The position numbers and the translations under genes are program-made. Source: Cyanophora paradoxa CCMP329 (Eukaryota; Plantae; Glaucophyta). From it: DNA of 64,000 bases. Position 1 is the first letter of the stretch. The number at the start of each line of letters is the position of its first letter. The stretch spans positions 1-64,000 of the forward strand of contig QPMI01000478.1 in NCBI GenBank assembly GCA_004431415.1, read 5' to 3'. This document shows, one piece after another, positions 1 through 64,000 of this stretch. Below the pieces are notes generated by a model that made no database searches, was not told where the DNA came from, and saw nothing but the letters and a program-made list of their open reading frames with translations.

Positions 1-3000
1 GCGAAGCTCAAGCCCGACCGATACATCTCGGTCGGGCGCCGGCCGTCTAGATCCCACGAGGACGCAAGGGAGCCAGCCGGAGAGATCAGCCTCCGCTTCG
101 TCTTGCCGTTCATGGAGGGAAACTCGACCAGCCACGCCTGCAAGTCTTCGGAGCGCCTCGCGCAGGACGCCTGCAGCATCTCCGGGCGCCTCGTTGGCTC
201 TTGGCGCTTCGCTGCAGCGGAGGCCCTGGCGTGCACCTCGCACCTTGACGACGCCGACTATGCGCGCGTCGCCTGTGCGCCTTGCATTCTTCGTTACCCC
301 CCAATGTGCCTTCGTAACCGCCTGACTTGCCGTACCCTACCCGCAGGTGTCCCCGAGAGGATCGAGCGGCCCGTCGGCGACAGCGAGGCGGTGGTCTGCA
401 CGGGAATCCGGCTGCTGGCGGAGCGGGTGGACGTGGCGGAGTACGCGGAGGGGTACCGGCCCGAGGGGGCGCCGCTGTGGCCGGCGCTCCTGCTCAACGT
501 TTACTATTTCGATGTCGACATCGGCGAGGTGACTGTGCAGGTCGACCCTGCGTTCCTGCTGTCCCAGTGGGGCTCCCCCTGCGACGCCGCCCCCAACATC
601 TGCGGCTGCGTCGGCTGTTGCATCGTGCGCCCGCCCCGTCCCTCCCCTCGCCGCCGGCCACTCATTTCGACCGCCGCTCCGCCCCGCCCCGCCCATCCGC
701 AGCACGAGAGCTACGCAAAGAACGAAGACTGCGCGGCGCTCTGGGCGCGGCCCGAGGTCTGCCCCGCGGAGGAGGACGGGGGGCGCCTCGTTCTGCGGCC
801 CAAGCCGCAGGCCGCCCAGGAGGAGGCGCCGCCCAAGGCCGGCTCGAAGGCCAAGCGGCAGGCGCCCAAGGGCGAGGAGCCGACGCCGCTCGACGCCTGC
901 CCCGAGCCGGTGCGCGCGTGCGGCGTTCGATCCATCCCGCCCTCCGCTCTGTCTGACGGAGTGGGGCGGGCCGGGGCAGGAGATTCTGGAGCGCTGGCGG
1001 GCGATCGTGGCGCTCCAAGCGGGCCGCCCGGACGCGCTCCCGCCCTCTGCGCCGCCCGATTCGGACGACTTCGCTGCCGCCTACGTGCGCTGCGCCGCGC
1101 GCCGTGCGGCCTCATAGTCTTGACTGCCTCGGCACAGAAGCACTTCAGAGACGTGGCGGGCGTGCTCGCGAAGCTGCGTGACAGGGTCGTCGAGGCGGAG
1201 CGGCAGCTGTACTTCGAAGAGAGCCCTGACTCGTTCGCGTACGCCGGGGCGAGCGCGGCAGGCTCGGGGGGCAAGTTCCTCGCCGCCGGCGACCCAGAGT
1301 ACCTGTGGGGCATGGAGGTCCGCCCGGGGTACGTCTGCCGCGAGGGTGCGTCTGCCTCTCCCGCGGCACTGCGCGCAGCCCTCGCCTCCCCTCACTCACG
1401 CTCGCGAGCTTCAGGGGCGCTCTTCAAGCGGCCGCCGTACTACTACGCTGGGACGTGGCAGGAGGGGGACCCAGGGGCGGACGGGCAGCTCCTCGCCTTC
1501 GCCCGGTCCTTCCTGCTGGCCATCGCGGCCCACAGGGCGCCGCCGTTCACGCCGGCGCCGCCCGACGAGTCGGACCGCCGCGGCCTCATCAAGGTTCGCG
1601 GAGCGCCTGCCCGCCCGCCCGGCATTGGCCCCGCAGCCGCTCACTTTCTGGGCCCAGGCGAGCCTTCGCGAGCTGCAGGGCTTCCTCGATGCCTTAAAGG
1701 GCGCCCTGGAGCGGGTCGGCGAGCAGCCCCCGGCCTGGAGCGAACTGCGCGGCTTCGAGGACGAGCGGCGGCTCGGGCAGCGCGTCTCGACCCACCTCGG
1801 AGCCGCCTGGGCGGCGACCGAGGGCCCCGAGGACACCGCGGAGCAGACTGCGAAGCGGTTTCTGGACGAGGAGCCGTGGTGCTCCTCCGTTTCTGCGCGG
1901 GCGGCCCTTGCGCGGCACGCGCCGCTGGTCGCGGAGTGGGTCCAGGCCCAGCTGGACCTCGAGGAGACGCGCGCCTCGGCGCGCGCCGCGCGCCTGCGGA
2001 CCTTCGCGCACGCGGCGGGGCGCGCCGAGGGCCAGCGCTTCCGCGCCGCCTGCGGGCACGTCTTCGCGGAGCTCGGCCGCAGGCGCATCGCGGCGGCGCT
2101 GGAAGCGCAGCGGAGGGAGAGCGAGGAGGCGCTGAACAGGGCGGCGGCCGCGGAGGAGGAGGCGGCGGCGAAGCGGACCGCCGCGGCGAAGGAGGCCGAG
2201 GCGGCCAAGCGGAGGCGGGCGCTCCAGAAGCAGAAGGGCGGCGGTCCCGGCGGCGCCGGCGCCGGCGGCCGCGGCCGCGCCGGGCCCGCCGGCAGCGACG
2301 ACAACAGCGACAGCGAGGACGAGGCCCCTGCCCCGGTCCTGCAGCCGCAGCCGCAGCCGATGCCGCCGCCGCCCGCGCCGCGGGCGCCCAAGGCAAAGCA
2401 GAAGGCCGCGGCGGCTGCGGCGGCGCCGGCGCCGGCTTCGGCCCCGGCGCCGGCTCCGCCGGTGGAGGAAGAAGTGGACTCTGAGGAGGAGCGGGACCGG
2501 CGGAGGCGGGAGCGGGAGCAGAGGGCGGCGGCGAGCCGCGCGGCGGCGGCGAAGCTGCGGCGGGAGCTCGCGGAGGCCAACGGGGAGCTGGAGCGGGCCC
2601 GGAGGGAGCTGGACGAGGCCAAGGAGGCCAGCTTTGTTTGTTTACGGTTCCGCCGCTTCTCTCCCTCCGCTCAACTCTCCGCCCGCTCGCGCAGGTCCGC
2701 GCGAGCGCGGAGCGGCAGCGGGCGGAGGCGGAAGGCCTCAGGGGGGTAGAGGAGCGCCAGCTGAGGAGGGAGCTGCGCGAGCTCGAGGACGAGGCGAGCG
2801 GGGGGCCCCGCTACCCCCCTCCCTCTCTTCCTCCCCCCCCCTTAGATCTAATCTCGCCGACGGATCGGGTCCGCGCGGGCAGATCTCGGACCTGAAGCAG
2901 GTGCAGGGGGCCGAGCAGGTGCGCCCAGCGCCCCGGCCCGGGGCCTTGCGCCCTCGTCTCCTTGTATTCACGTACGCCGGCTTGCAGAAGCGCCTGGCGA

Positions 3001-4354
3001 AGCTGCAGGCGGAGCTCGCGGAGGCGCGGCGGAAGGGGGACGAGGAGCGCAGGCGGGCCGCCGACGCCGCGGCCCGGGCGAAGCGCGCGCAGGTGCCAGC
3101 GCCCGATGCTATCCGCCCGTCTTATTATCGCTGCCCCACCGCCCTCCCTCGTCTCGCTCGCCTCGCCGCTTCTCCCTTTCATCACCGTAGCCATAGACCT
3201 AGCGATACATCTGCGCCCAATCCTTAAGACCTAGCCCCCCCCCCCCCCCCCTCCCCCTCCCTTCTCCCCCCCCCTTCCCTCCCTCCCTCCCTCCCTCCTC
3301 GCCCTCGCCCTAGCCCCGCCGCCTCACCTCACTAAGACGAGCGCACCCTTTGAGCGCTCACTGGGCCTGCCGCTGGCCACCCCCTCCCCCTCTACCCCTC
3401 CCCCAGCACATCTGCGCCCACTCCATAGTATGAATCCACGAGACCCGCGCCTGGCCGCGCCCCCGCCCCGCCTCACGGGACCTCCTAGGAGGTCTCCCCT
3501 TCATCACCGTATCCAAAGACCCAGCGCTACCTCTGCGCCCAATGCACAAGAACCCGCCGCCCTAGCCCTCCCCCTCGCCCCTGTCCTAGTCCAGCCGCCT
3601 CACCTCAGAGACCCGCGCCTCGCCCCGCCTCGCCAGCCTCACGGGACCGCAGGAGGAGGCGCAGCGGGTCGAGGCGGAGGCGCGGGGGGCCCTCCGCGAG
3701 GAGGACCTCCGCAGGGCGCGCCCGTACCCCCCCTACTCCCCCGGCCCCCACCCCTTCCTCAAATCTAGTCCTACGGTCACGCGTTTCTTCGTCCTACCCA
3801 GCTTCCCCCCCCCTCCCGTATCCCCCCGTATCCCGCGTCCCGCCCGCCCGCCCGTACCCCCTCGCTTCACCACAATCCGGCACCCCCCTCCCCCCCTCTC
3901 TTACCCCCCCCCCCCCCCCCCAGGCGATCGCGGAGCACGAGCGGGCGATCCAAACTGCCGAGCGGAACATCGCCTACTACGCTTCAGTTGAGGCCAAGTA
4001 CACGTGCGCAAACCTTGCGCCCCGAGAACGGGGGGCGGAACGCCGCCGCTTCTTGAACGGAAGCACGCCTAGCTACTAGCGCCTCCGCCACGCCCCGCTT
4101 CTAGCTGGGGCCCTTATTCCCTCGTTTCCTTCCTATCGATTTCCTTCCTAAGTACGTGTGGGCTCCATCCGAGCGAGAAAAGTAGCTTCGAAGGCGGATA
4201 GAATCGCACGAGAGCGTGTGGACGCGGGCGCAATAATAATAACAACAATGAAGCCGCGCGCGGCTCACGCACTCGCTCGCTCGCTCCCTCGCCGGCGCCG
4301 CAGGGAAGCGAAGGTGGCAGAGATGGCCCCGGCGCAGCTGGCCGCCCACCTAAG
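1..4354 (+). CDS. Multi-exon region, 5' end outside the window or uncertain: unrecognised globular N-terminal part followed by a long Glu/Arg/Ala-rich coiled coil. Probably the N-terminal part of the JAMM gene below
   Basis: Coding-like exons bounded by GT/GC-AG (e.g. ...YRPEGAPLWPALLLN, QKHFRDVAGVLAKLRDRVVEAERQLYFEE, ASLRELQGFLDALKGALE...AAAKLRRELAEANGELERARRELDEAKE, AIAEHERAIQTAERNIAYYASVEAKY). No family recognised. Confidence 0.65.
3090..3650 (+). repeat. Intron containing degenerate internal duplications and poly-C tracts
   Basis: TTCATCACCGTA at ~3178 and ~3500; (C)ATCTGCGCCCA-like at ~3208, ~3409 and ~3531; AGACCCGCGCCT at ~3441 and ~3608; CCTCACGGGACC at ~3471 and ~3637. Confidence 0.75.
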
Positions 4355-6347
4355 GTGAGAGCGGCGGGGCTGGAGGGGTGACGGCCCAAAGGGGGGTGAT
4401 GAGAGCCTAGACCCGCCCCGCCCAGCCCCGCCCCGCCCCGCCCAACCCAGCCCGGCCCCGGCATCGCCCCCGCCGCCCTCGCCTCACCGTGGGTCGCCCC
4501 AGGGACGTCCGGGATAGCGTGGCGAGGTTCGAGGCGCGCCTCGCACGCGGCCCGGCGGCGGCGGCGCCCACCCCTGTACCCCCGACCCCCGCTCCCCCTC
4601 CCCCCCCGCTGGAGCCCACCCGCTCCACGGGCCCCTCCTCCCAGCCTCCTCGCCCCCCGCCCTTCGCCCCCCCCCAGATGCAAGCCGCCAAGAAGTACAA
4701 CCCCCTCGAAAGGGCTACCCCCCGGGGGCCCGCCCCCGCCCCCCCCTCCTCCTCGGCCCCGGCGCCGCCCTCCTCGTACCCCCCCGCCACCTCCCCCCCG
4801 GGCGAGAACGACGACGAAGAGGACGAGCTCCTGGCCGCCCTCCTGTTGGAAGACCGTACCCCCCCTCCCCCTCCCCCTCCCCCCTCCCTCCCTCCGGACT
4901 CCGTCGCCCCCTCTTCCTCCATTGCAGCCGCCCCCGCCCGCGCCGCCTCCTCTGCGCCCCCGGCGGCCCCTGCGGCCGGGCCGTCCAGTTCCCCTACCGG
5001 CCTGCACGCGACGGTACCCGTCTCTTCCCCCCCCCCCCCATCTTTCTCCGCATGTTCTCTTGTTCACTTTCGGGGCAGCGGGGCTCGGAGACCGCTCCGC
5101 AGGGCAAGGCCCGCGCCCCCGACGTCGACCTTCGGCGGGTTCGAATCGCGGCGAGGCTCATTGAGAAGTTCGAGGCGCGTACCCCCCGGAGCGCCCGCCG
5201 CCGCTCCGCCGCCCCCCTCACTTTCGGCGCAGGAGCTCGCGCAGCCCAACACTTCGAAGAACAAGGAGACGTGCGGCATCCTCGCCGGTACCCTGGTCCG
5301 CTTCTTCCCCCACCCCCCCTTCCCCGATACTTCGTTCGCTGATGATGGGCGACGCAGGACGGGGACACGCATTTCACAGTGAAGTCCATCATCCTGCCAA
5401 AACAGGTACCCCCTCGCTTCCCCCCCGCCCCCCCACCCCCCCAAGCGACCCTTTCGCCGCAGTCGGGCACGTCGGATACGTGCGACACGGACCCCGACGA
5501 GATGGCGCGTCTTACCCCGCAAGGCGACGCCGTACCCCGCAGGCCCCTAACTGCCTCCTCCTCTCTTTTCGCGCCGCAGGACTACATCAATCTCATGTTC
5601 GAGAGAGACTGGAAAGTCCTCGGCTGCATCCACGTACCCGCCCCCTCGCTTTTCTCGTACCCCCTCCGCCTGCTGATGTCTCTACCCCCGCGCAGACGCA
5701 CCCCTCCCAGAAGTGCTTCCTCTCGTCCATCGACCAGCACAACCTGCTGGGGTACCAGCTTCAGCTCCCCGAGGCTGTATCCATCGTCATCGCCCCCTCG
5801 TTCAAGGAGGACCGGTACCCCCCTCCCACCCCCCCCCCCGCACTCCTTCTTACCTCATCCTGATTGACGTACCCCGGACAGCCTCGGCGCGTTCCGGCTT
5901 ACGCAGGAGGGGGTAGAGTGCCTGCTGCGGTGCCCCAAGGAACTCGCCTTCAAGTTCCACGAGCACGAGGTACCCCCCCACTCTTGCGTCCCGTACCCCC
6001 GCATCCCGCGCTGACACTTGTTTGTGCGTACCCCCAGATCGCGCACGATCGAATCTACCACCGGACGACGCACTGCGAGATCGTGCAGGGCGCCGTTGGC
6101 GCGGACATGGTAGAGGCGCGCCCGTACCCCCCGGCCCCTCTTCCCCCCTTCCTCCCCTTCACGCCTTTCGATGCAGGCGATCGATCTTCGGGAGCGGCTG
6201 GGGCCATCCTACGCCGACAAGGCATCTTCCTCCTCCTCCCGGGCCGCCGGGCCGGCGCCGGGGCCCTCGGGCGCCGCCGGGGCCGCGAATCCGAAGGGCG
6301 GCTCTGGACCCCCCCCAAAGAGGGCTAACCGCGGCGGCAAGGCGTAG
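4304..6347 (+). CDS. AMSH/STAMBP-like JAMM (MPN+) zinc metallo-deubiquitinase domain preceded by a Pro-rich linker (multi-exon)
   Basis: Spliced peptide LRRVRIAARLIEKFE|ELAQPNTSKNKETCGILAGTL|...VKSIILPKQ|SGTSDTCDT...|DYINLMFERDWKVLGCIH|THPSQKCFLSSIDQHNLLGYQLQLPEAVSIVIAP...|LGAFRLTQEG...RCPKELAFKFHEHE. The catalytic E...HxHx7SxxD motif is intact, as are the AMSH-type second Zn ligands (H two residues after the catalytic D, C, HxH). Stop TAG at 6345-6347. Confidence 0.9.
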
Positions 6348-43200: not shown

Positions 43201-46200
43201 ACCGGCGTTCGCGACAGATCACCAGCACGCGCCCGGCTGACACGTTGTTTGCAACCAAGTTCCCCATCCAAATCCGCTGCCAGGCGCACCAGACGGGTAA
43301 CGCCAACTCTGACCGCGACATGGTCTTCGCTTGGAGCGCGCCGAACGGCGAGCCCGAGCTGGCGAACATATCGACGCTCGCTTCGCGCTCAATCCAGGAC
43401 TCTAACTCCGTCTCAACTCTGTCGCTGACCGAGAAGTCGGGCATCGAGCTCAAAGCAGATCGGATCTACATCATTCGATGCTCTGCTTACACTCAAGCCG
43501 GCGGCATCGCTTTCGCTGGTGAGGCTGTTCCCATTGTTTCCAATCGAAACGCTGACGTCAACTGGTTTTCTTAAGGTTCTCAAGACGTTTCTGTTCGAAT
43601 CATTTCCGGTTCGTGGCTTCAGTCGATCGCGAAGAATCATAGGATATGCATAAGTATTCCGAGCTCACGTTAAAGCAGGCCCGAAACCAGGCGATTGTTC
43701 GGTGGATCCTCTTGCCGGCATCGCGTTGGAGACACCATTTGTCGTAACGTGCTCTGGTTGGACAACGAGCTACTCCTCCGAGGCGACGCTTCGTTATCAG
43801 CTCAAGGTGTGATCGAGACCCGCGGCCGCGCGATCTGGTGCAATTTCAGTGTGGAAGGCTGATCGTGATGTGGCGCAGATGGTTTCTTCTGGCGGCGAGC
43901 TGGTGACAATCACGCAGCCGCAGCCTCCGGCTGTGATGAGAACGTGCGTCGCTTCTTCCGTCGTGTCACTTCTGTTTAGAGCTGAACGAGCCGGCGCTTG
44001 ACCTTCTCGATCAGGACGTTGCCCGCTAACGAGGGAGGCACCGGCAACCTAACCCTCGTCATTGTTGTCGTTGATGAGTTCGGATCGGAAACCGGTGCGC
44101 ATTGGCTTCGTTCAAAGCTCGCTTATGCTGACGGAAAGTGCGCACTGCGTAGAGCACCGGACAAACGTCGCTGTGCGGAGCCAGCTTCTGGAGGCCCTGG
44201 CGGGCTCTCTTGCTGCTGGAGACGAGACGAAGACTCAGCAGCTGGCGAAGGATTCGATCGCAACGCTCCTAAAGCAGGCGGGCAGCGCGATCGCCGCGAC
44301 CGAGGGCGACGGGGACCGCGAGGGGATGATCGGCGCCACTGTCAACGCCGCCTTGATGGTCGCCAATGTAATGAACAAGGGTGCGCTAGATCTAGAGCTG
44401 CGCGCAGCGCCTGCGGACGCTCTACGACGAGATCGCTGATCTATAGCTTCTCTCGCAGCCTTCGCCACATCCAAGGACCCCACCGTGGCGCTGACGAAGA
44501 TCGATGATGCCGACGGGACCATTCAATCGCTCCTAGCCCCGCTCATCAAGGCGGTTAAGAAGATTACGAGCTCAAACGACACCACAAAGGGCGAGGTAGG
44601 TTGAAATATTAAATACCTCTCAAATTAGGGGGCGTCGGACGTTCGCCGGGTCGCGATCGGGCGTCTGAGCGCGTGCGTGCGGTCGCAGATTTTCCAGACG
44701 ATGTCCGCTGTGTCAGTTCTCGCCGAAGTTGTTGTCCGGTGAGCGATACCAGAACTGAAATGATGGGAGGGCTTGAAGTTTTTACCGGTGCACGTGCCTT
44801 TCCTACAGGACCTCGACTCAGGACGTCCAGGCACAACTAGCGGAGCTGCTGAGAATTCTCGTCGACACGCTTCACGACTGCACGTATCTGGACGAGGCCA
44901 AAGGCATGATTATGAAAACTACGGACGCGTTTGTCGGGTGAGTAAATAATCTGCGATGTTGACGCTCTCCTGCGCTTGCACTGCAATTTACTCACTGTTT
45001 TATCAGATCCCCTGACTGGACCCGGTTGTCGGGCATCGTCCAAGGCATCCTGGATCGCTTCATTGAACGCGCGCTCTCGTGCACCGCGTGCGGCACGGGC
45101 GATGAGATGGCGAGCTCGAAGCGAATCACGCTCGTCTTTGGCCGCGTCTGCTTCTCCACGGCTTCAGCGTCCAACACCATGGCCATCAATACGAATGGCG
45201 AAGGCGGGCAGGTTTCCATTCCTTCGGAGCTTCAGGCGCTGGCCCAGAAGACCTTGGGGAAGACCACAGACGGCTTGCCTTTCAAGTTCTCGACGTTCAA
45301 GGTCCGCATAACTTTATATTCCGACTTCGTGCCCGGGTGTTGACTCCGCACCAGCGCAATCCGTTTGAGGACTCTATCAACGTTAACAGTTCGGCTTCAT
45401 AGTGCGTTCCGAATGAAAAAAATATAATTTCTTATACGTTGTGTCCTCTAATGCTCCATCAGCAACATGTCGCGTCGCGCTGGGGTCGTCGACATGGAAA
45501 TTCCCGGATTTCCCGTCTCCGGCCTTTCCGAGCGCATCCGCTTCCGCTTCCTGCTCTCGAACGGGTCCGCTCTTGATTATATGTATATCAACATATAAAT
45601 CTTATGTCACCATTTGCATTCTCCGCGCGTTCTTTGACGCCGTCTGCGCAGCACCGCGCCTGAGCTCCCCTTGGACCTTGTATTCTTCAACAAGACTGCC
45701 GGAACGTGGCAGCGGTGCTCCAACGTCACTATCGAGATTCGGGGCACTGCGTACTACGGAATCGGCTCGTGCGACCACCTAACGCCCTTCGTGCGCACAC
45801 ACCACGCGCGATCCTGTATCGACTTGCCACAGAATGCTCACATCGGATTCCTTGCGAAAACGCGCAGACCGTCGGCGCGCCGCCTGCCGGGACCGACGTC
45901 CTGCAGGCCCCGATCCGCGGCGAAATTGTCGCCTCGTCGCAGAATTCCGAGATTCCTGCCAGCAGCAGCGTGAACCTCGGCGCGGCGATCGCTGTCCCGG
46001 TCGTGCTCGGCATGCTCGCCATCGTCGCCGTGTCGGTCTTCGTCGTGTATCGCCACATCAAGAAGCGCGTGCACATGGTTCCGCCGGGAGGCTTCGTCCC
46101 CGTCGTCCCTGGCGCCGCGGAGGGCTGGAGACAGCGCGCGCTTTCGCCCCGCGGCGGGGCTCCGGTGGGTGCTTACGCCGTCGAACCGGATATCGAGGGC

Positions 46201-46296
46201 GGCCATGCGTACGGACGCGGCTCAACGGCAGCTCTGTCGGGGCCGTATGCCGCCCCGCAGCAAGCCCGCCGTCAACCCCTGCATATTGTCGTCTAA
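10209..46296 (+). CDS. Giant multi-exon type-I cell-surface protein: signal-like segment, dozens of two-Cys filamin/Ig-like repeats, PKD/REJ-like module, GAIN/GPS motif, single TM helix, short cytoplasmic tail
   Basis: Hydrophobic N-terminal segment CIPALLAVALVLLAAGSPVQAT (~10457-10523). Continuous + strand exons separated by short GT(GC)-AG introns carry the recurring module LSC-x2-4-R-x3-G-x4-C...SP-x-L-x3-DF...G-x-L-x-FTF. REJ-like LAIPRGTLPPGESFTLTMTA...LQAVITGGDR...LELSAGSSRDPD...LSYTWT (42.6-42.9 kb) and PKPGDCSVDPLAGIALETPFVVTCSGWT (~43680-43763). GPS FFNKTAGTWQRC...GSCDHLTPF (45683-45790). TM LGAAIAVPVVLGMLAIVAVSVFVVY followed by RHIKKR; stop at 46294-46296. The start codon and single-gene status are inferred. 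Confidence 0.8.
28620..34300 (+). repeat. Four-copy higher-order (~400 aa) tandem repeat within the giant protein
   Basis: Recurring landmarks FG (28752), FGPALDFS (30276), YGPALDFS (31557), FGPAIDFS (33050). Each is followed by L-x-C...G-x-F-x-F[TS]C, LSC-x-P-x-R[VI]A-x-G[DE], V-x-x-[IV]-x-C-x-PG-x-R, and [FW]KYG in the first three units. Confidence 0.85.
42230..44100 (+). other. PKD/REJ-like module of the giant protein
   Basis: REJ-type motifs (L-x-I-P-x-G-T-L; V-I-x-G-G; L-x-L-x-A-x-x-S-x-D-P-D; Y-x-W; P-x-x-G-x-C-x-V-x-P-x-x-G-x-A-L-x-T-x-F-x-V-x-C-S-G-W), recognised by eye rather than by HMM. Confidence 0.75.
45683..45790 (+). other. GPS autoproteolysis motif (C-terminal end of a GAIN domain)
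   Basis: FFNKTAGTWQRCSNVTIEIRGTAYYGIGSCDHL|TPF matches the GPS pattern W-x-x-C...C-x-H-L|T-x-F; the codons for CDHLTPF lie at 45770-45790. Confidence 0.75.
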
Positions 46297-47172: not shown

Positions 47173-51994
<4,822 letters not shown>

Positions 51995-52048
51995 CGCTCG
52001 TCTTTTTTTCGAGGGGGCTGTCCGCGAGGCGGGTACACGGCAGAAGCG
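51995..52048. promoter_or_regulatory. Ultra-short bidirectional promoter / 5' UTR interval between RTCB and the SDR gene
   Basis: RTCB ATG at 51994-51992 (-) and SDR ATG at 52049 (+), leaving 54 bp between them. Confidence 0.55.
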
Positions 52049-53956
52049 ATGTCGGCGCTCTGGGACGCCTCCGGCATTTCTCCTGCCGCTGCAGGGACGT
52101 TCAGTCGAATTGCAGCGGCGGTGTGCGCCTTCCTGCTGCTGGCGACGCTGCTCCTAAGGAGCTCGAGGCGGTCTCGGAGAGCAGCGGCCTGCGACAGCCA
52201 CTGCGTCTTCGTCACAGGTGCAAGCGCTCTCAGCGTCGCTTCATCCTGCGACGACCCGCTTGCTGGCGGCGCCCTGCGGCTAGCGTCACATGGCGGGAGC
52301 GGGCGCTGACGCGTCCGGCTTTCTGGCGGCGCGGCGCCCTGCGGCTAGCGTCATATGGCGGGAGCGGGCGCTGACGCGTTTTGCCCCCGCGTACGCGCCC
52401 CGCAGGATGCTCTTCTGGCATCGGGCAAGCGATAGCGGTGTCGCTGGACGCCGCTGGCTGCAAGGTCATCGCTGGCGTGCGGCGGGCGGAGGACGGGCAG
52501 CGGCTGCAGGACGCATGTCGCTCATTAAAGTGTGAGCGCCGCGGCCTCGTCTGCGCCTCTCCGCAGCGCCCGACGGCCGGCCGGCAGACGTGATCGTCGA
52601 CGTGGCGAACCTGGATCTCGTGCGGCGGCTTCCCGAGGCGATCGCCGGAATGGTCGGAGACAGCCGCCTGTCTCTCGTGAACAACGCGGGTGCCCGCGAC
52701 GCTTGCCCGAGTGCGATCAATTTTCCCGCGGGCCGGTCCGACGAGCGCGCGCCCGCAGGCGTGATGATGCAGGGGCCGCTGGAGAGCACTGCCATCGAGG
52801 AAATGAAGCGCCTCTTTGACGTCAACGTCTTCGGCGTCTGCGCGGTCTCGCAGGCGCTCCTACCAACCATCCGGCGGACCCGCGGGCGCCTCGTCATCAT
52901 CGGTGCGCCTCGCAGGCCCTCCCGCGCGCGCCGCTCTCTCGATCTAACGGAGCCCGCGCGCAGGCTCCATCTGCGGGTTCGGCGCGCTACCCTTCTGGGG
53001 GGCGTACAGCGCCAGCAAGTTCGCGGTCGAGGGCATCGGTGCGGTACCCCGGCCTCCCTCGGCTCCGTACCCCCCTTAGCCCCTTTCTCCCGCAGCGGAT
53101 AGCCTGCGGAGGGAGCTTCGACCGCTCGGCGTCCCCGTGTCCCTGATTCAGGTCTACCCCTCTTCTCTCCCCCCCCCCCCCCCCCCCTCTTCGGTCCAGC
53201 GATCGAGAGCTGACGCCAAGCAGGCGGGCGCCGTCCGGACGCCCATGATCGGGGAAAAGGTCAGCTCAGCTGAACTCTCCGCTCGCTCGCTGATCAAATT
53301 TGAATTTGATCCGGATCAAATCTTCGAAGGTTGCGGGCGGGGAGTGGGCGGCGCTGGCGGAGCGGGCCCCCGCGTACGCGGCGGGGCTGGAGGGCTTCCG
53401 CCGCTTCTTCCTGGGCCTCCAGGGGGGCGCCTGCGAGCCGGCCCAGGCGAGCCCGTACCCCCCCACCGCCCCCCGTTTCTAGAGCCTGCCCGGCTTCTGG
53501 CCTTGTCGCATATGGGCGCTGGCCGAAGCCCTAGGGTCCCTTGGCCTTGCCTCGAGGCAAGAAGCCTCCACCGCGTCCCGCCCCTGCGCTGGGGCGCCCG
53601 CGCCGGCGCAGGTGCCTCGAGCGCGGGCGCCCTGCCCCGCCCTGGCCCGGCCTGGAGGGGAACCTTTAGAACCCGCCCTGGCCCAGCCTCTGGGTTTAGA
53701 ACCTTTAGAACCTCTGGCTGACTGCCGCGCCGCGCCGCGCCCCGCTCCCGCGCTGACCGCCTGCGCAGGTCGCGGACGCGGTGGCGGAGGCCCTCCTCTG
53801 CGCCGGCCAGCCCCGGGCCCGGTGCGCCCTGCCCCGCCCCGCCCCGCCCAGCTAGCTTGGCGTGGCTGTTGGCTGCTTGGCTTGCGTAGCACAGTATCCA
53901 CCTCGCCCTAAGCCTCCCCCCCCCCCCCCCCCGCCTCCCACACTCCCTCCGCCCAT

Positions 53957-53988
<32 letters not shown>

Positions 53989-54118
53989 CTCCCAAGCCCT
54001 CCTAAGCCTCCGCTCGGGCAGGTACCTTGTGGGAAGGGACGCGGGGCGGCTGCGGGCGCTCCACGCGTGGCTCGGCGACGCCGCCCTCGACCGCGTCTAC
54101 GAGCTCGCCCTCCGCTAG
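52049..54118 (+). CDS. Classical short-chain dehydrogenase/reductase (RDH/17beta-HSD-like) with N-terminal membrane anchor, multi-exon
   Basis: N-terminal hydrophobic IAAAVCAFLLLATLLL; VFVTG|CSSGIG (TGxxxGxG); LVNNAG; FDVNVFG; GRLVIIG|S; YSASK (YxxxK); SLRRELRPLGVPVSLIQ; stop TAG at 54116-54118. Confidence 0.93.
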
Positions 54119-54769
54119 GAATCGAATTCGATCGAATTTGATCCCGGGCGCCCCGTAGCTATGACAGGCGAGCTCGTAGATCGAATCGTAGGACGCCGCC
54201 TTCGACCGCGTCTACCGGCTCGCCCTCCGCTAGCTAGAGCTCGCGGCCGCTAGCGGCTCCCGGGGGCCCCCCGGGATAGCAGCCCGGCAGTCCTCGGCCA
54301 GGCAGCAGTCTCTCGGGCCGGGCTTCGGTCCTCCGCCCCTTACTAGTTATTTTAATTCGCTCATCAAGCTTCGATTATTCCGCTCTAATCTCGTTTCCTG
54401 TCGCTGCACAGTTTGCGTCAGTTTGCGTCTCGCTTTCAATCTTTGCAGTTCCCATGCACACTTGAATATCCGTTTTCACATCCAACGTACAGTACAGTCT
54501 CCCGGCTTTCACGCAGTTGTTTTGGGGTTGTCTAGTCCTGTAGTTTGCAATTGCTGCAGTCGTTCTTTTCTTTTTCATTGCAGGCTTTGAATTCAGCTTC
54601 AGGCTAATTTAATTCGAGAGTACTAGTCATGGGCCCTGGCCATGGGTGGCCAACTCATGCACTCTGGCCAAGTTGATGTCTCCCGTTAGTTTCCCAGGCA
54701 CTAATCTCGAAGGACTACCGCCATAGTTCGCTGAACACGCTTGTTCTGTTCTCTTTCAATTTCAACGAT

Positions 54770-55940
54770 CTCTTACAAATAGGTTACTCCTTGCGCGGGC
54801 CGACAGCGGCGCCGCGGCCCGCGCGCTGCGCCCGTCAGAGGTCCGCCCCCTCGAGATCGGTACCCCCCTCCGCGGCGAGGCCCGCCCCGCCCGCGTCCGC
54901 GAACGCGGTGTCTGCGAACGAAGCTCGAGCGGGATCCGAAAGGGGGCCGGGCGGGAGTCGAACCGAGGGCGTCCGCGTCGGAGACGTGACGGTCCCCCGC
55001 CTCGCTCTCTACCCCCTGCACGGGTACGCCGTCCGCGAATGGGTCCCCCTCGAGGAAGTCTTCCCCATCCTCCTCGCCCACCTAATAACAAAATTCGATC
55101 GCGGAACGGGTTCGAATCCGAGCGAGCGGCGAGCGCGGCGCGGGTCGACCAGCATCGCGCACCGCCTGGGCCTCCTGGTCCACTTGGAAGTAGTCGAAGG
55201 AGGTGTCCGGACAGCAGTGGAAGCTGCGAGGGCGCCCGCGTTGGCAGAGGCGGTCGGCGCGGGCCGCAGCGGCGGGGCCGCAGCGCACTGCTTGTCGCTG
55301 CTGCCGTCGGGCCACCTGCGCGGGCGGGGCGGGGCGGGGCGGGGCGGGGCGTCAGTTTTGCTAAAGGCGTACAGCGCAGCGCCTCTGCTCGGATCGACGC
55401 ACAGCCGCACGATGACAGTCTTGGTCTCTCCGCGCTGGCCGGGGCGTCAGGCGCGGCCGGGAGGCCGGGCGGCCGTGGCGGGGGCGCGGCGGGGGCGAGC
55501 GCGCGCGTGCGTGCGGACCGGGCACGTGTCCTTCTTGTCGATCGGCGTGCAGAAGACGCTAGGGTCACCCTTCTCGGGCGGGCAGCACAAGTCCGTCGAG
55601 AACTCGCCGCCTGCAGAGCGGGTCAGGAAAGTGTAACGGCGATCCACGGGATCCAGAATAAGCAGACCCGACGGGAGAAGGGCACGGATGGGAGTCTGCA
55701 CGTGCAATGCCGTCGGTTAGGAAAAGCGCGGCACCGGCGCGGGGCGAGGGCGCGGACATGGACGAAACCCTTGGGGCAGATGCCGCCCACATCCGCGGGG
55801 TCGATGCACTTGCGCGGCATCTCTCCTTACGATTCCACTCTATGTCCTGTGACGATTTCGACAGGCTCTGCTCGCCTGCCGGCTCCTCTTTCAGCTCCCG
55901 CGGCGCCGGAGCAACGCCGCACTGCCAGCAAACGCTGCGG
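54770..55940 (-). CDS. Putative small Cys-rich protein of unknown function, multi-exon; boundaries uncertain
   Basis: Exon-like segments between GT..AG: MPRKCIDPADVGGICPKGFVH, GGEFSTDLCCPPEKGDPSVFCTPIDKKDTCP, RWPDGSSDKQC. No family recognised. Confidence 0.45.
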
Positions 55941-56207
55941 GGATGAGCCTTAGCGCTCCTTCGGTGAAGGCAAGAAAGCTGAGTCGAAAGCGTATGCGAA
56001 GGCTGGGCGGCGGGCTCACTCTGAGTTTCGCGCCGGACTAACTGACGCCAATGACGGCGGTGGCAGACTGCCTGGGCGGATCCGCCGCCCTAGCTCTCCC
56101 ACCTCCCGCCGCTACGAAGGCCGGCCTCGCAGGCCTCCCGCCCGGCCTGCTCGCTCTTTCGCGGGACGTTCTGTACCCAGACCGGTCCGCTTCCCCCCTC
56201 TCCAAAG

Positions 56208-57159
56208 ATGCCGCCAGCGACGCCGGAGCGAGGCGGGGTCGCCGTCGCGCCCGAGGAGGGATCCGAAGGCCAGATCAACACGCTCTGGAAGGTTCGCGCC
56301 GCGGTGGTTGGGCGAACGCCCGCGAGCGCGAATGCGCGGCGCTGAGGCCCGCGCGTCACACTCGCGCGGCCGCAGGAGGTGCTCGCGGACAGGCCAGACC
56401 AGCCGCACGAGTCCCGCTGGTGCGGGGCGCTCGCGCGGCGCTTCCCGCTTGAATTCGCAGCTCACGCCGCGCCGCGCAGGTACGGCGACGCCAAGGACTA
56501 CTGGTCGGTGCGCTCATCCCTCGCGGTTGCCGCGCGTCGCCGGCCGGCCGCGCGAGCGCTCGGCGCCGGCGAGCCGCGGGGCTTAGCTTGGCTCGAAGCC
56601 CGCGCGGATCGGATCGAATCGAACGCGGCTGACGGGGCGCGGTCGCCGGGCGCAGAAAGTCGACGCGACGGTGGACGGAGTGCTGGGTGGCTACGGGAAG
56701 GTCCGCGCCCCAGCGCCCGGCCCCGCCAGGTTCGAATCCGACGCCCCGCGCCCCGCCAGGTCGACGGGATCGACATCCGCGGCTCCGCGGCGTTCCTCGA
56801 GGCGCTCATGGGCGAGCGCCTGAAGCAGGGCGACCGGCTCCACGCCGTCGGTGCGCGGCGCCCCGCCATCTGAAGATTTGATCCCAGCTACGCCCTCCAA
56901 GCCTACACGCTAGGCTACGCCCGCTCCGCGCCGCTAGGCTTTCGAATCGTAGCTTCCTGACCCTCGCTTAGCTTCCTAAGCCGGGCCCTCCCCGCCAAGC
57001 GACCTATCAGCGGTCCTCTTTCTGAGCTTAGATTAGATCCGAGCTTCCTTGGCTAAGCTCTCGGACTGCGGGGCGGGGATCGGGCGGTTCGGCTAAGCTG
57101 TCTGTCTAAATCCTAGGCCTAGGCCTAGGCCTCTGCCGAGTCCTCGTTCTCCTGAGCTC

Positions 57160-57196
<37 letters not shown>

Positions 57197-58716
57197 GCTC
57201 GCGCCGCGCCTTCTTCCGCGCCGCGCCGCCTTCCAAGCTCAAGCTCATCGGCCGGCCGGCCCGCACCGGTCGCCCCGCCTCGCCTCAGACTGCCGAGCCT
57301 TCTAAGCCGCTCATTGTCTAAGCCGAGCCTTCTCTACGGGCGTGGCACGCCGAGTCCTCCTCTTCCTGAGCTCATCTATCTACATAGCTCGCGCCGCGCC
57401 GCCCCCCAAGCTCATCGGTCGCCTCGCCTCAGACTGCGGGGCGGGGATCGGGCGGATCACGAAGGGCTTCCTCTCCGTCTACTTCGGGAGCGTCGACCTC
57501 GTCGAGCAGGACCCCCACTTCCTCGAGAAGGCAAGGGGGGGGTAGAGGGGGGGGGGGAGGGGGAGGGGGATGTGGGGCGAGAGGAGGGGGGGGGGGAGGG
57601 GGGGGGACTTCCTCGAGAAGGCGCACCAGCGGGCCAGAGGGGGCCGCCGCCGCTCGCTTCTAAGCTTGGGGCCCCTCCCCGCGAGCGGCCTAGGGTTAGG
57701 GCTAGACACTCTTGGAGAAGGAGGCGCTAGCGAAAGCGCGGGGGGGGGGGGGGGGGGGGGGGGGGTAGAGAGCGCGAGCGAAGCTAGAGCTAGGGCTAGG
57801 GAAGGGAGGCGCTGGCGAAAGCTAGAGAGCTGGAGCTAAGTTAGCGCCACCTGAAGCTGCCCCGACGCCGCCGCCCGCGCCGGCGCTCCCACTCACCTTG
57901 CTCACCTGATCTGACCTGACGCCCCCCGCCGGCGGCAGGCGAGGCAGGACCTGGGCTCGACGGGGCGCAAGTACCGCTTCATATGCAGCGGCCTCCAGGT
58001 GTGTGCGCCCCGCGCAGGTTCTTGCACGTCATCATAAGCATGAACCAGCCATCGATAAATACCATGTAAATACCATGATTTCCCACGGATGATTAGATGC
58101 CGGATCTTTCCGCGCGCCCCCCACTCAGGCCGCCTAGGCCCCCGGCGCGCCTCGCCTGAGTGTGACCGCGCGATCTCGCCTGACGGACGATGCCTCCCCC
58201 CCCCCCCCCCCCCCCCCCGCCCGCAGGAGTTCAACCCGGAGCCGGGGACGTACGACGTGATCTGGATCCAGTGGGTCATCGGCCACCTCACCGACGGTAC
58301 CCCGGCCGCCCCCTGCGTACCCCCCCCCCGCATCTCAACGGCCGTACCCCCCGCAGAGGACATGGTGGCGTTTCTGAAGCGGTGCCAGCGGGCGCTGCGG
58401 CCCGAGGGCTGGATCGTGGTCAAGGCGAGACCCGTACCCCCCCCACCTCCCCCCACGTCCTTTCCGCTTCCGCCCCCCCCCCGCCCCGATTCGCCCTCCC
58501 CTCCCCCCCTCTCCCCCACCCCCAGACCAGATCGTGGTCAAGGCTAGCCCGCCCGGCACCCATTCTCCTCATCCCCCGCACACTTCCACCCCAACACACA
58601 CCACCCCTCCTCCTCCTTCCCTCCCTTCCCGCCCTCCTCCCTCTCTGCCAGTCCCGAGCCAGTCTCGGCGTGCCTGAGCCCGGCCCTGTGTACAGCTCTA
58701 CAGCCGTCTAGACAGC

Positions 58717-58747
<31 letters not shown>

Positions 58748-59825
58748 CCCCCACCCCCACCCCCACCCCCACCCCTCCGCTTGAGCGGTTCTACCCCCCC
58801 CCCCCCCAACCCCAACCCCCGGGCCCACTCCTGCCCCCTTCTCTCCCGGGGGCCCCGGGTACTCCGACGCCGCTCACTCGTTCCCGAACCCGAACCCGTT
58901 CCGAACCCGTCTAGGCGGGCCCGACCCCGGCCCTGTCTACAGCCATCTAGACAGCAACCCCCCCCTTCCCCCCCCCCCCCCCCCCCGCCTCCGCTGCTTC
59001 CTGCCCCCTTCTCGCTCCCTCTCCCTCCCGCTCACTCATACCCCTGCAGGAGAACAACGCGAACGAGGGCTTCGTGGTCGACAAGGACGACTCGAGCGTC
59101 ACCCGGTGCGCGGTGTCGGCCTCTTGATGCAAGCTTTTTTAAGGCTTTAGAGCTTATTTCTTTCTTTCTTTCTAGAACCTTGACAAGCTTGATACAAGCT
59201 TTTTTTAGAGCTTTTTTTTTAGAGCTTCCCCTGGGCGCTTCTAGTAGGGCTCTAAGCTAGCTAGCTAGCTAAGATCCAAGCGAGCGGCCTGGCAGGCCTG
59301 ATAGCTGGCATTCCGGGTGCCTCCTGTTCCCAGCCGTGTGGGGGATTCGGGGCTCCCGACCCGTCCCGTCCGCCTTTGTTCGCGCCGCGTCGGCCCTTAT
59401 CGGCCTTATAGGTCGAACGCGCTGTTCAAGGAGATCTTCGCGCGGGCGGGCCTCGCCCTCCACAAGGAAGAGCTCCAGGTGCGATCGATTTGTCAGATCT
59501 AGAGTATGTCGGGTCGCCGGGTCGGAGGGCACATGTCGTCTTAGAGCGGACGGGCCTTGGGCTTGCTTCTGTCGGGCCGCGCCGGGTCGCGCCGGGTCGG
59601 GGGGTACATGTAGATTTAGAGCAGACGGGCCTTGGGCGTGCTCCCCGCCCCATAATTATGTAAGCTAAATAAAGAAGAGCGGACGGGCCTTGGGAGTGCT
59701 CCGCGCGCCATAAATCAAAAAGCGCGTTTTGCTTTGCACGAGAGCTCACGCCCTCCGGATTTGATCCGCCGCAGAGGGGCCTCCCAAAGGATCTGTTCAA
59801 GGTCCGCATGTACGCGCTCAGGTGA
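56208..59825 (+). CDS. NTMT1: Alpha N-terminal protein methyltransferase 1 (NTMT1/METTL11A/Tae1 family), multi-exon
   Basis: INTLWK|EVL...[10 protein letters not shown]|[15 protein letters not shown]|[13 protein letters not shown]...|[14 protein letters not shown]...VDLVEQ...|[22 protein letters not shown]|[10 protein letters not shown]...GWIVVK|ENNA...[12 protein letters not shown]|...Q|[16 protein letters not shown]. The start could alternatively be at 56051. Confidence 0.95.
57040..57432 (+). repeat. NTMT1 intron with (TCTA)n microsatellite and duplicated acceptor/exon-start sequence
   Basis: (TCTA)n at ~57160-57195. GACTGCGGGGCGGGGATCGGGCGG at ~57064 copies the exon start at ~57432, and GCCTCGCCTCAGACTGC at ~57277 copies the acceptor junction. 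Confidence 0.8.
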
Positions 59826-60563
59826 GCGGGGCTCTAGCCCTGCCCAGGTGAGCGGGGGCGGAGCTCGGCTGCGAGTCAGTTCGGAGCGTTCAATCGCGCC
59901 CCGCTTACGATTACGTATTCGCACCCCCAGGTGATCATGATAGCTTTTATATAATTAGTAGCGCCACCAGTGAACAGCAGTAATTATAAACGCGGGGGGG
60001 AGGGGGGGGTAGAACCGCTCAGGTCGATCTTATATATATATATAATCAATTTGGGCCTAGCACGTGTGGTTAGTTGTTCGAGTGGTCAGGAAAGTGCGGC
60101 ATTTATAATTATCGGCGAGGCAAGAAGTAACGTGGGGTCTGTACATGTGCATGAAGGATCGGCGGATCGCGAACGCCCGCGCATATATATCATCGATTAA
60201 TATCTGTACTACGGTAACTGCGCCCGCGGCCCTCCAATTGCAAGGCTCTCTGGCTCCCGGAGTCCGCCCCCATGTGCAAATTCTGTCGCTTCATTCGAAT
60301 TCGGTGTACAAGACTGTTCGCGGTAAAAATAGAGATATCGCGAGAGTTGCACACGAGTGAATCGGGATCTAGAAGCATTACGAAAGTATAACTACGAAAT
60401 CAAGAGCTTGGGTACTACCGCCGCCACGCGTCTTAAGCTTGAGCTTGAGCTTGAGCTTCAGGGCTTCAAGTATATATTCTGTCTTCGAGTGCAGAGTTTC
60501 TTCAACTGTTTATTCTCTCTTCGAATGCTTCCGAAGGATTCAAGAGTTTCGAGTTTCTTACCT

Positions 60564-63500
60564 TCACCACGGCACGGAGAGGAACGCGGCGAACGCAGAC
60601 GAGAGCGCGGCAAAGAGGAGGCCGACCAGCGGCGCATACACGAAGGAAGCGCCTATCCCGTTGGGCCAGTAAGATCCGTTGGCGTTGACTGAGCCACTGT
60701 ACGACAGGAGCGCGAACTGCGGACGCACGTCGAATTAAATTTAAACTGGAAAAGAGAGATTATACAAGATCGAAAACTGCTCATGATCATTTGCGCATGC
60801 ACCCCCGCGCACCGGGGTCAGGTGGTTGCACTTGCCACTGTACACGCCGGCGGTGGCGGAGGCGGACGCCAGGCCGCAGCTCGTGTCCCAAGCCTTCGTG
60901 TCGGCGTTGTAGAAAGCCAGCGCAACCCGCTGAGTCGCAGCTACTGTGGCGCTGCTCTTGATGGGGAGGGCAAACTAGACGGGGGAGGGCGAACGTAAAG
61001 ACGAGATCCTTGTCAGTTAGCTTTGCAGTGTGCAAATCAACTTGCAAGCACCGTAATGTTGGACGGGAAAGTTTTGATCTCGATCACGTTACCGCTGCTG
61101 TCCAGGCTTGTCGCGGAGATCTGAGTACGCCATGTGCATAGCAGTCAGTTTTAATTTGCGGTCAGTGATCTTGCAGGCAGTTGCGGGGATATGCATGCGC
61201 ACGTCATAAATCTCGGACGCAAGGTTAGAGCCCGCCGGAGGCGTTGGGAAGCCGGAGGCGGCGAGAATCACAATGGCAGTCTGCGTTCATTGAAATTTGA
61301 ATCCCGCATGTCGTAATATTCACAGATCGAGATCGCGATCGATACGCGATATCGATATCGATTATACCTGATAATCTCCGGAGTATGCGTTCTCGGGCAA
61401 GATAATCTGCGGTTGGGCAAGGCAATCATTGAACAAGCCACAGAAAATTCGATGCAGTGCCTCGCACCGAAACGGACTTGAACGTGAGCTGAAGGGATGC
61501 GAGTGCACTTCCGCAGACCTGCCAAAGACAATTTCGAATTGATATGGACTTTGCCTTATTAAAGACTGTTGGAACCTTGAAGCGGGCCGGCTCGATCTCG
61601 CTGGATCGCGTCTGGGCTCCACAGCTCCCGCTACCAAGTGTCACCTGCGCGTTCCAATGCACAAATCAAACTTTGATTCGACCCAGAAAATCCATGGCTA
61701 GCCGGTTTTGAAAAGTAAAGCGAAATTCCGCACCTGGGTCGAGACTTTGCTGAGCGCGGCCGACGTCTGGGCACGGATAGAAGCGGCCTCAGATGAGGTG
61801 GCTGGCAGAGCGGACAGCAGGCCCGCCAATCCCGCTTGCAGTCCCTGCACGTTTATCCGTCTTAGTAAAAGCCGCTGGATGTGCACTGAAAGATTTAGGG
61901 CATCTGACCGCTGCGTCGATTCCAGCAGTTGTTGCGAGGTTCTGCGCGCACCAAATGCGCGTAATAAGCTTGCAGTTAATCTTGTGCACTCGTACTAGAG
62001 ATCATTAATGTCGAATAGAGCGAACTGACCGGATTCTTGCTCAAGACCGCCATCAAAAGCTCGGCTCCAGACTTGGCGGCGGTCGCCTGCAAGCCATTCC
62101 AAGGCGATCGGATATCGCGAAATTCGAGAAGCAGAGAGTTACGAAAGACTCACGGAAACTGCTCCGGTGCTGGCCGCAACTGGAGCAACACTGGCGAAGA
62201 AGTTCACCACCGCACCAGCCGTCTGCGCGCGCGGGCAGCCGATCGCGATTTGAGGAATGCGATGCGCACGCAAACGGAATTCCCCAATTAATATTCATAA
62301 CACAATCAGGGTCCGATTCATATCTATTTAAAATGTGACATCGTGACATCGAACCTCGCACCTCAGGGTCGGCCAGGTTGACTCCCGCCTTGTTCGCCTC
62401 CGTTGTGACCGTCGTCATTGCTGATGCCATCGCGCTGGAGAGCTGCAGAGTGAATGCGTTAGAAATGTTAGGCGAAGAAAAGAGAAGGGTGGACTCAGGA
62501 AATCCAACCAGGTTAAGCAGCGTCGAGTTCCCTGCGGCCTGCTGCAGGAGACGACGGCCGCGGCGGAGCGAGCTGCCTGAGGCGGCGTTGTACTTCGCCT
62601 TGAGGCCGTGGACCAGCGCCACGATCTGCTTCATCTTCTGCTTGAAATCCAGTTTGTCGTTCTGCATCGCCTTATCTCAGTATTCACGCATTGTCGCGTG
62701 TGGGATTAGTGTGTAGGCACGCGGGGATGCGACCTGCCGACCCTGGGCTCGGCGGGACGCGTGGGATCGCGAGGGATCGCTATCGCTCTGTAGTATTCTC
62801 TAGAACCGTGTATCCCTATGAGTGATCTGTACCCGGACAGGCCCGGCGTACCCGTAGTAGCTATAATAAGCGGTGGCCGAGGCGTACTGACGCCGACGTC
62901 GGCCCTAGCAGCACGTAGGCTGCACTAGCAACTAGCAGCACGAAGGCTGCACTATCTAGCTCCGCATGCACGATAATCATGCATGCGACACGCATTGAGC
63001 TGGCAATTGATTTGCGTACCGCAAGTATCGACGTCATCCGAGCGTTAAAGTCCGCGACGGTTGCCTGTTTGCAATAAAGGTATGCGTAACCAATATATAT
63101 AATTGAAGCGAACTGGCGTTGCGCGCGATTCGAGTGCGACACTCACCTCGAAGTCGCTCACAGCGTTTCCGGATGAAATAATTAGCGGAGTGACAGTAAC
63201 TGTGCCTGCGTTTGCGGTGGTAGATTTGCCCCCATTCGTGTTCGCGATTTCGACTGACACAATCGCCCGAATGGCACTCGACGATACCTTATCCATGATT
63301 TAGCAAGCCCGAGAAATATTAGCGAACTTTAACGATACATGTGGCATTAATATTGTCAGAGCTTACCGCGGGGAAGAAGAGTTCAAGCGGCATTGTCAGA
63401 GCTTTAGTGTAGACGGTGACGGCGCTGCTGGAGTCCGATGTGGTGTAGGAAACGGTGTACGTCAGCGTGGTCGGAGTCCAGCCCGAGCAATTGACCTGGG

Positions 63501-64000
63501 CCCGCAGGCTTAGGCGCCGATACTTGATGGCATAAGCTTAAGAAGGAATGCAAGCGTACCGTTGCGGGCTCGACGCCGGCCTTGACAGAAGCCGGCTCGA
63601 TCGTGCATATCCCTCCCGAAGGAGCCGCTGAACCCCGCCAATTGCAAAAACCAACGTTAACATGTACAGGAACTTAGATTGCAGATGCGGGCCTCATTCG
63701 CATTTTTAGAGCGGACCTGTCTTCTCATCGACATTTGGGGCTTCTGTGGGTGCAGGCGCCGGCAGCGGTGTTGGTGACGGCGTCGAGCTTTGTCCAGAAT
63801 GCACGTGCACATGTACATGCCATGATCCGATGATCAATATTCCAATCTACACAACGTTAACAGCGCAGTCCCTTGCGCGCACCTCGGCGCCGGCGAAGGA
63901 GTTGGGCTTGCGGTAGCGCTCGGGCTCGGGCTCGGGCTCGGGCTTGGTGTTGGCTGCACGTGCACAGCGATTAGCCGCGTGGTGAAGCATTTAATTTGCC
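60564..64000 (-). CDS. Second REJ-like + GAIN/GPS surface protein (3' part; start beyond the window) ending in a hydrophobic GPI-signal-like C-terminus
   Basis: Ser/Pro linker PTPSPSPSPSATASPTPSPAP (~63.9 kb). REJ C-terminal signature AAPSGGICTIEPASVKAGVEPAT|VNCSGWTPTTLTYTVSY (~63.45-63.63 kb). Helical region containing RRGRRLLQQ (~62.55 kb). GPS ALAFYNADTKAWDTSC...YSGKCNHL-TP|FALLSY (CNHLTP at 60830-60813). Ends ...GASFVYAPLVGLLFAALSSAFAAFLSVPW* (TGA at 60566-60564). Confidence 0.8.

Follow-up and report, generated by a model that had tools for sequence, protein, structure and literature searches.

GAIN domains have been studied almost exclusively as the switch of adhesion G protein-coupled receptors (GPCR) and of polycystin-1, in which cleavage frees a strand that then activates the transmembrane bundle of the receptor itself. 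An earlier note on the DNA considered here held that characterized GAIN domains always sit on proteins with seven (7TM) or eleven (11TM) transmembrane helices, which is refuted by two described systems. In sea-urchin REJ1, the only membrane segment is 18 residues long and lies near the C terminus, and the protein was shown not to be anchored by glycosylphosphatidylinositol (GPI) (PMC2120838), and a one-transmembrane isoform of Drosophila Cirl exists (PMC13197933). Here, we describe a gene on the minus strand of a 64,000-nucleotide (nt) stretch of Cyanophora paradoxa CCMP329 DNA (contig QPMI01000478.1, positions 1 to 64,000; hereafter the window). It is probably an intact multi-exon gene for a surface glycoprotein of the secretory pathway, composed of a head encoded beyond the window, a Pro/Ser/Thr stalk, the end of an REJ module, a GAIN domain with an HL/T cleavage motif (the slash marks the scissile bond), and a hydrophobic C-terminal anchor.

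The gene resembles each of these systems in part. As in polycystin-1 and PKD1-like proteins, REJ is followed by a GAIN domain with HL/T next to the membrane, and the GPS is cysteine-poor, but the PLAT/LH2 domain, the 11 transmembrane helices, the channel-like part, and the cytoplasmic tail are all missing. The best structural matches are GAIN domains of adhesion GPCR (BAI3 4dlo, CD97 9mqr/8ikj, BAI2 8oek, and CELSR1 8vy2, with Z-scores of 11-12), which share the two subdomains and a cleavage motif between the last two strands that is followed by a hydrophobic "Stachel" strand. They differ in that the window gene has no 7TM part for this strand to activate and a larger helical subdomain, while identity to them is only 10-18% and the Pfam GPS match is below threshold. 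Since there is no 7TM, PLAT, or 11TM part, the product is neither an adhesion GPCR nor polycystin-1. Sea-urchin REJ1, which acts as a recognition receptor, likewise has REJ in a large glycosylated ectodomain, one short hydrophobic segment near the C terminus, and no channel or 7TM part, but it is an animal protein with EGF and C-type lectin heads, and ∼15 residues follow its 18-residue segment. The one-transmembrane isoform of Cirl also carries GAIN on a non-7TM anchor and must signal via a partner, but it arises by alternative splicing of a 7TM receptor gene rather than from a dedicated gene family, and it keeps a true membrane helix. Our literature search found no paper on Cyanophora GAIN domains, on a Cyanophora GPI transamidase, or on a GPI-anchored GAIN protein.

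Structure of the gene

Reading of the window sequence on the minus strand from 63953 to 60564 gives 19 exons, all bounded by GT..AG, that form a single open frame. The domain order is a Pro/Ser/Thr linker, an REJ-type motif, a helical region, a β region that ends in CNHL/TPFALL, and a tail. The linker is encoded by two exons of 71 nt each, 63953-63883 (PTPSPSPSPSPSATASPTPSPAP), with its frame and GT..AG sites taken from the sequence, and 63787-63717 (STPSPTPLPAPAPTEAPNVDEKT), which is in frame with both of its neighbors. Because the first of these opens at an acceptor (63954), the gene extends upstream, out of the window. The C-terminal part of the REJ-type module (63627-63147) comprises three exons (63627-63560, 63495-63367, and 63287-63147) that encode PSGGICTIEP...VNCSGW...LTY plus β strands, PSGGICTIEP being in the first exon and VNCSGW..LTY in the second. 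The helical part, which would correspond to GAIN subdomain A, occupies seven exons between 63064 and 61734 (63064-63020, 62661-62509, 62442-62362, 62222-62154, 62086-62030, 61941-61909, and 61844-61734), as defined by splice sites and by mapping onto a paralog, P0002. The β sandwich (subdomain B), with the GPS motif at its end, occupies six exons between 61644 and 60813 (61644-61576, 61518-61468, 61406-61368, 61280-61203, 61120-61052, and 60974-60813). The last exon (60716-60567) encodes the final β strand, a spacer, and a hydrophobic stretch, and is followed by a TGA stop codon (60566-60564).

From the REJ motif on, the 17 exons form one open frame of 501 codons. All introns that follow the first of these exons are phase 0; 15 of them measure 57-139 nt, and the remaining one (62662-63019) is 358 nt long. 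The gene contains four N-x-S/T sequons, which is compatible with a luminal or extracellular location.

The GPS core C-N-H-L-T (60830-60816) has its predicted scissile bond between Leu (60821-60819) and Thr (60818-60816). Exon 60974-60813 carries FYNADTKAWDTSC...YSGKCNHLTP, and exon 60716-60567 starts with FALLSY; all the peptides that the earlier note had quoted are present on the minus strand at the places it gave. The junction 60813/60716, for which that note had asked for confirmation, has GT..AG boundaries and is phase 0. It is used by the public model of this locus, P0001 (tig00020824_g14237.t1, 270 amino acids (aa)), which has the same stop codon. In six paralog models HLTPF spans the equivalent junction, and a further model, P0010, enters an intron directly after HLTP, which indicates that the intron position is common to the family. 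Since no RNA contig lies on the exons, the support for the junction comes from the sequence and the paralogs.

A Cyanophora family of REJ-GAIN proteins

A search with the 54-aa GPS exon against 1.84 billion representative proteins returned seven matches at E up to 0.001. Five of the seven, at E 4e-19 to 2e-5, are Cyanophora models in which the motif is present, and no motif-bearing match came from any other organism. Sequence and profile searches together define a family of eight members, 169-622 aa long, all from Cyanophora, so that at the sensitivity reached the family is specific to this lineage, as had been proposed. All eight have an unchanged CNHLTP, and the next residue is F in each of the seven whose models pass the intron. 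Upstream of CNHLTP, a V, L, F, N, K, W, and C are also invariant in the family; the GPS tryptophan and two cysteines are among the invariant positions (W378, C382, and C400 in P0002).

When translated singly, the window exons align contiguously onto P0002 (454 aa). Overall they are 57% identical to it, and the GPS exon agrees with it at 45 of 54 positions. In order, the exons match P0002 residues 10-56, 57-68, 74-130, 131-157, 158-180, 182-199, 200-210, and 212-247 in the first part, and 248-270, 271-287, 288-300, 302-326, 327-349, 350-405, and 406-450 in the second. P0001 has the last junction and stop in common with our model but retains one intron and skips seven exons. The end-to-end mapping onto P0002 confirms the exons missing from P0001, and chance is no explanation for it. 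The public models of the family all start at odd internal sites, have no signal peptide, and lack their N termini. The public Cyanophora annotation splits the family into wrong pieces and is unreliable. P0010 ends within the intron after HLTP, and P0009 continues into a long Pro/Arg-rich frame.

As assessed with Pfam, two paralogs score above the cut-off of 25 bits for REJ (PF02010), P0009 with 34.9 bits and P0010 with 27.4 bits, although both matches span only profile positions 311-442 of 452, i.e. the last ∼130. P0005, P0006, and P0008 are below threshold. The window exons carry the same PSGGxCT...CSGW motif as the paralogs and are too short to score alone on this profile. 

The window also contains a giant member of the family on the plus strand (∼10209-46296), of which the gene described here is a real paralog in its REJ-GAIN/GPS part. 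Its GPS exon (45638-45790, ...FFNKTAGTW...CDHLTPF) is 39-45% identical to those of the short family, and in the product of its last exon (45868-46296) a 25-residue membrane helix is followed by RHIKKR and then by ∼78 tail residues; the earlier description of it as a single-pass protein stands. The two genes have in common the REJ tail motif, F-[FY]-N-x5-W, and C-x-HLTPF; the latter two had been correctly recognized as shared, but the spacing before the W had been given as x4 instead of x5. The intron site was placed within one codon of the same GPS position in both genes, and indeed the giant gene has a GTGCGC donor after CDHLTPF (45790/45791), one codon later than in the window gene. Unlike the window gene, the giant gene has a helix with a basic stop-transfer cluster and a tail, and a huge repetitive ectodomain. 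The genes were said to be 14 kb apart and convergent, which is accurate (14.3 kb), although they are separated by at least one further transcribed gene. The residues that follow CDHLTPF in the giant gene (TVGAPPAG...) are unlike the hydrophobic last strand, and its final acceptor or its ability to be cleaved may be in doubt.

Predicted fold of the GAIN domain

The fold was modeled with AlphaFold on the closest complete paralog, P0002, as a proxy for the window gene, using the family alignment. The pLDDT (predicted local distance difference test) was 69 for P0002 and 75 for the GAIN part alone. The model consists of a β hairpin, ∼8 helices, and a β sandwich, with helices at residues 51-252 and strands at 267-411. 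HL/T lies in the turn that joins the last two strands (in the domain model, residues 351-358 and 362-367). Foldseek against the PDB placed GAIN domains at the top (BAI3, BAI2, GPR110, latrophilin-3, CELSR1, CD97, and CL1; E 8e-8 to 1e-4), and VIA-align of P0002 residues 242-413 gave a Z-score of 12.1 for BAI3 (151 residues aligned, root mean square deviation (rmsd) 3.4), followed by CD97 (11.7), BAI2 (11.2), and CELSR1 (11.0). The structural alignments with CELSR1 and GPR126 reach into the helical part. In the ESM Atlas, the nearest shape is a cluster named "sperm receptor for egg jelly-like" (TM-score 0.49 over 314 residues), and the clusters nearest by features carry GPS or REJ. The domain is thus modeled as GAIN, as the earlier note had predicted, and in this model the match lies in the β subdomain and the overall layout. 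A family profile run against the sequences of solved structures returned only fungal lectins (E ∼0.01), which we dismiss as chance matches.

C-terminal tail

The HL/T bond is followed by 52 residues, TP plus the 50 encoded by the last exon. The earlier note had counted about 45; its description of a hydrophobic stretch that runs to the stop without a cytoplasmic tail is correct. The last exon encodes FALLSY, i.e. the final strand, then a Ser/Gly/Asn spacer that includes SYWPNG as well as the sequon NGS, then GIGAS, and then a 26-residue hydrophobic stretch (60650-60573, residues 23-48 of 50) with one proline within it; P-W and the stop codon follow, and there is no charged residue after the stretch. 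No 7TM, PLAT, or 11TM part comes after the GPS, which bears out the proposed absence of a transmembrane bundle: the 52 residues, the stop codon, a candidate poly(A) signal, and a convergent gene are all that is found there.

In GPI signals, small residues at positions ω to ω+2 and a short spacer precede hydrophobic residues that extend to the C terminus. By this rule of thumb the tail of the window gene fits such a signal, with GIG or GAS 28-30 residues from the end. The same plan is kept in all six paralogs for which the C terminus is available, i.e. [SV]PYWPG, a small-residue cluster, a spacer of 6-8 residues, a stretch of 16-21 hydrophobic residues, and 0-5 further residues, even though these tails are only ∼30% identical to that of the window gene. 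From these features a GPI anchor appears plausible, and we slightly favor it over a helix without a tail. The motif [SV]PYWPG (SYWPNG here) stands 8-12 residues before the hydrophobic stretch, as seen in the tails of P0003, P0005, P0006, and P0008, and five paralogs have a lone basic residue (R or K) at the very end.

Downstream and convergent sequence

An AATAAA hexamer (60514-60509, minus strand), the candidate poly(A) signal, lies 50 nt past the stop codon. The next 330 nt past the stop are AT-richer and contain no hydrophobic open frame. Beyond them is the 3′ end of a convergent gene on the plus strand, whose last three exons are 59048-59104, 59411-59475, and 59772 to ∼59972. Its joints 59104>59411 and 59475>59772 have GT..AG boundaries and are found in contigs, presumed to be RNA, of four runs. 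This gene ends at ∼59972, perhaps up to 60239, which is ∼330-590 nt from the stop codon of the GAIN gene. This convergent transcribed neighbor limits how far additional exons of the GAIN gene could extend.

Weighing of the alternatives

Several findings speak against the reading of this gene as an intact one for a GAIN-bearing surface glycoprotein. The window covers the 3′ two-thirds or more of the gene, and the N terminus, with any signal peptide, lies outside it. The GPS has just two of its four canonical cysteines, and in P0001, which carries the window gene's own GPS, the Pfam GPS profile (PF01825) scores 14.3 bits (E 0.062), below the cut-off of 22.5; this match nevertheless spans profile positions 5-45 of 45 at the expected place. 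Pfam searches with ten single exons gave nothing relevant. The modeled fold is that of a paralog, P0002, rather than of the window gene's own joined model, and whole-domain TM-scores are ∼0.3, a value unchanged after folding the GAIN part alone, which indicates that the helical part differs from animal GAIN domains in size or packing. The family profile finds no GAIN structure among the sequences of solved structures. In an exhaustive structure search, ZU5 domains tie with the CD97 GAIN domain on the β subdomain (Z-score 12.3 each). At the other end of the protein, the 26-residue stretch is long enough for a membrane helix, and sea-urchin REJ1, which has a similar end, is not GPI-anchored (PMC2120838). 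Finally, none of the runs registered as RNA contains this stretch, and no contig of the four presumed RNA runs lies on any exon, while the neighboring gene is covered in all four, and the five family clusters that were looked up, of the eight, each consist of a single EukProt model, although the gene itself reads as intact.

These points bear on four other explanations. It is highly improbable that the β domain is of the ZU5/FIIND type and its HLT likeness coincidental. The ZU5 match to the β subdomain has an rmsd of 2.5 and equals that of CD97, and the FIIND of CARD8 also matches (Z-score 9.1); a common fold of the GAIN and ZU5 β sandwiches has already been described. ZU5 domains, however, are cytoplasmic and have no preceding helical subdomain, whereas here helices precede the β domain and are partly included in the CELSR1 and GPR126 alignments, GAIN comes first in Foldseek, and the sub-threshold Pfam match is to GPS, at the exact place. 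The combination of a helical subdomain ahead of the β domain with a GPS motif, an REJ context, and four sequons decides for GAIN over ZU5. Equally remote is a continuation of the gene, in which a donor toward the 3′ end of the final exon would splice past 60564 to exons for a tail or a transmembrane bundle. Weak donors of the gene's type (GTGCCG and GTGAAG) do occur shortly before the stop, but the sequence past it is AT-richer, has AATAAA, lacks a hydrophobic open frame, and gives way to the opposite-strand 3′ exons of a transcribed gene, and six paralog models end at the equivalent site. Such onward splicing, which the earlier note had named as a finding that would overturn its proposal, is therefore unlikely.

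Somewhat less improbable, but still unlikely, is that this is a silent or dying copy, i.e. an untranscribed member of an expanded family that is intact only through recent duplication. This would account for the four contig sets that cover no exon of the gene yet cover its neighbor, and for a search of the 1.84 billion representatives that gave no transcript-derived protein with the GPS exon. On the other hand, neither stops nor frameshifts interrupt the 19 exons, their splice sites are canonical, and identity to the nearest paralog is only 57%, yet every motif is retained; divergence without damage argues for selection. Moreover, contigs lose rare transcripts, and the runs represent laboratory conditions only. 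A more serious possibility, although still a tentative one, concerns the anchor, which could be that of a type I single-pass protein whose helix ends at the C terminus with practically no cytoplasmic tail and no GPI lipid. The 26 hydrophobic residues of the window gene would suit such a helix, as would the single R or K that five paralogs carry within 1-4 residues of the end, a minimal positive-inside signal, and the 18-residue segment near the C terminus of REJ1, shown not to be GPI-anchored (PMC2120838), is a precedent. However, the stretch is only 16 residues long in P0006 and P0008, a small-residue cluster lies 6-10 residues upstream of it in all members, and in the window gene no charge follows it, whereas in the clear single-pass member of the family the helix is longer, and RHIKKR and a genuine tail come after it.

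A possible mechanism

If the gene encodes a GAIN-bearing surface glycoprotein, the domain would cut itself between Leu and Thr in the endoplasmic reticulum, and the large outer fragment would stay attached solely via the last β strand, TPFALLSY. This strand would be borne on a remnant of ∼50 residues, which either a GPI lipid, the option that we slightly favor, or a tail-less helix would fix in the membrane. A pull on the head or binding of a ligand could then release the ectodomain, which would make the protein a detachable or force-limited tether. As there is no cytoplasmic part, any signal would have to go through a partner protein. We consider it possible, but doubtful, that this is a dedicated family of GPI-anchored GAIN proteins, in which the entire ectodomain, once self-cleaved, would be held by one strand of a lipid-anchored peptide of ∼25 residues. 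The domain would then serve as a purely mechanical fuse or shedding device, or would offer its exposed strand as the agonist of a separate receptor.

The glaucophyte family keeps the GAIN fold and the cleavage motif and has neither a bundle nor a tail. If the above reading is true, GAIN would be used, in a lineage distant from animals, with no transmembrane partner in the same protein, which would suggest that an older or more general role of the domain is to hold and release an ectodomain mechanically, signaling having been added later. The family would also offer a minimal natural system for cleavage and force-dependent release.

Other features of the window

The end of the convergent neighbor presumably resembles the C terminus of a class I methyltransferase. 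Within the 358-nt intron of the GAIN gene, segments 62692-62786 and 62884-62990 occur in the presumed RNA contigs; these contigs run into unlike sequence, indicating that the segments belong to a dispersed repeat or to a piece of another transcript. A third C.HLT, at 7115, is a chance occurrence. Two blocks of 65-74% G+C (1-6000 and 48000-60000) flank the REJ-GAIN family genes, which have 52-62% G+C, and the second of these blocks contains the transcribed neighbor gene.

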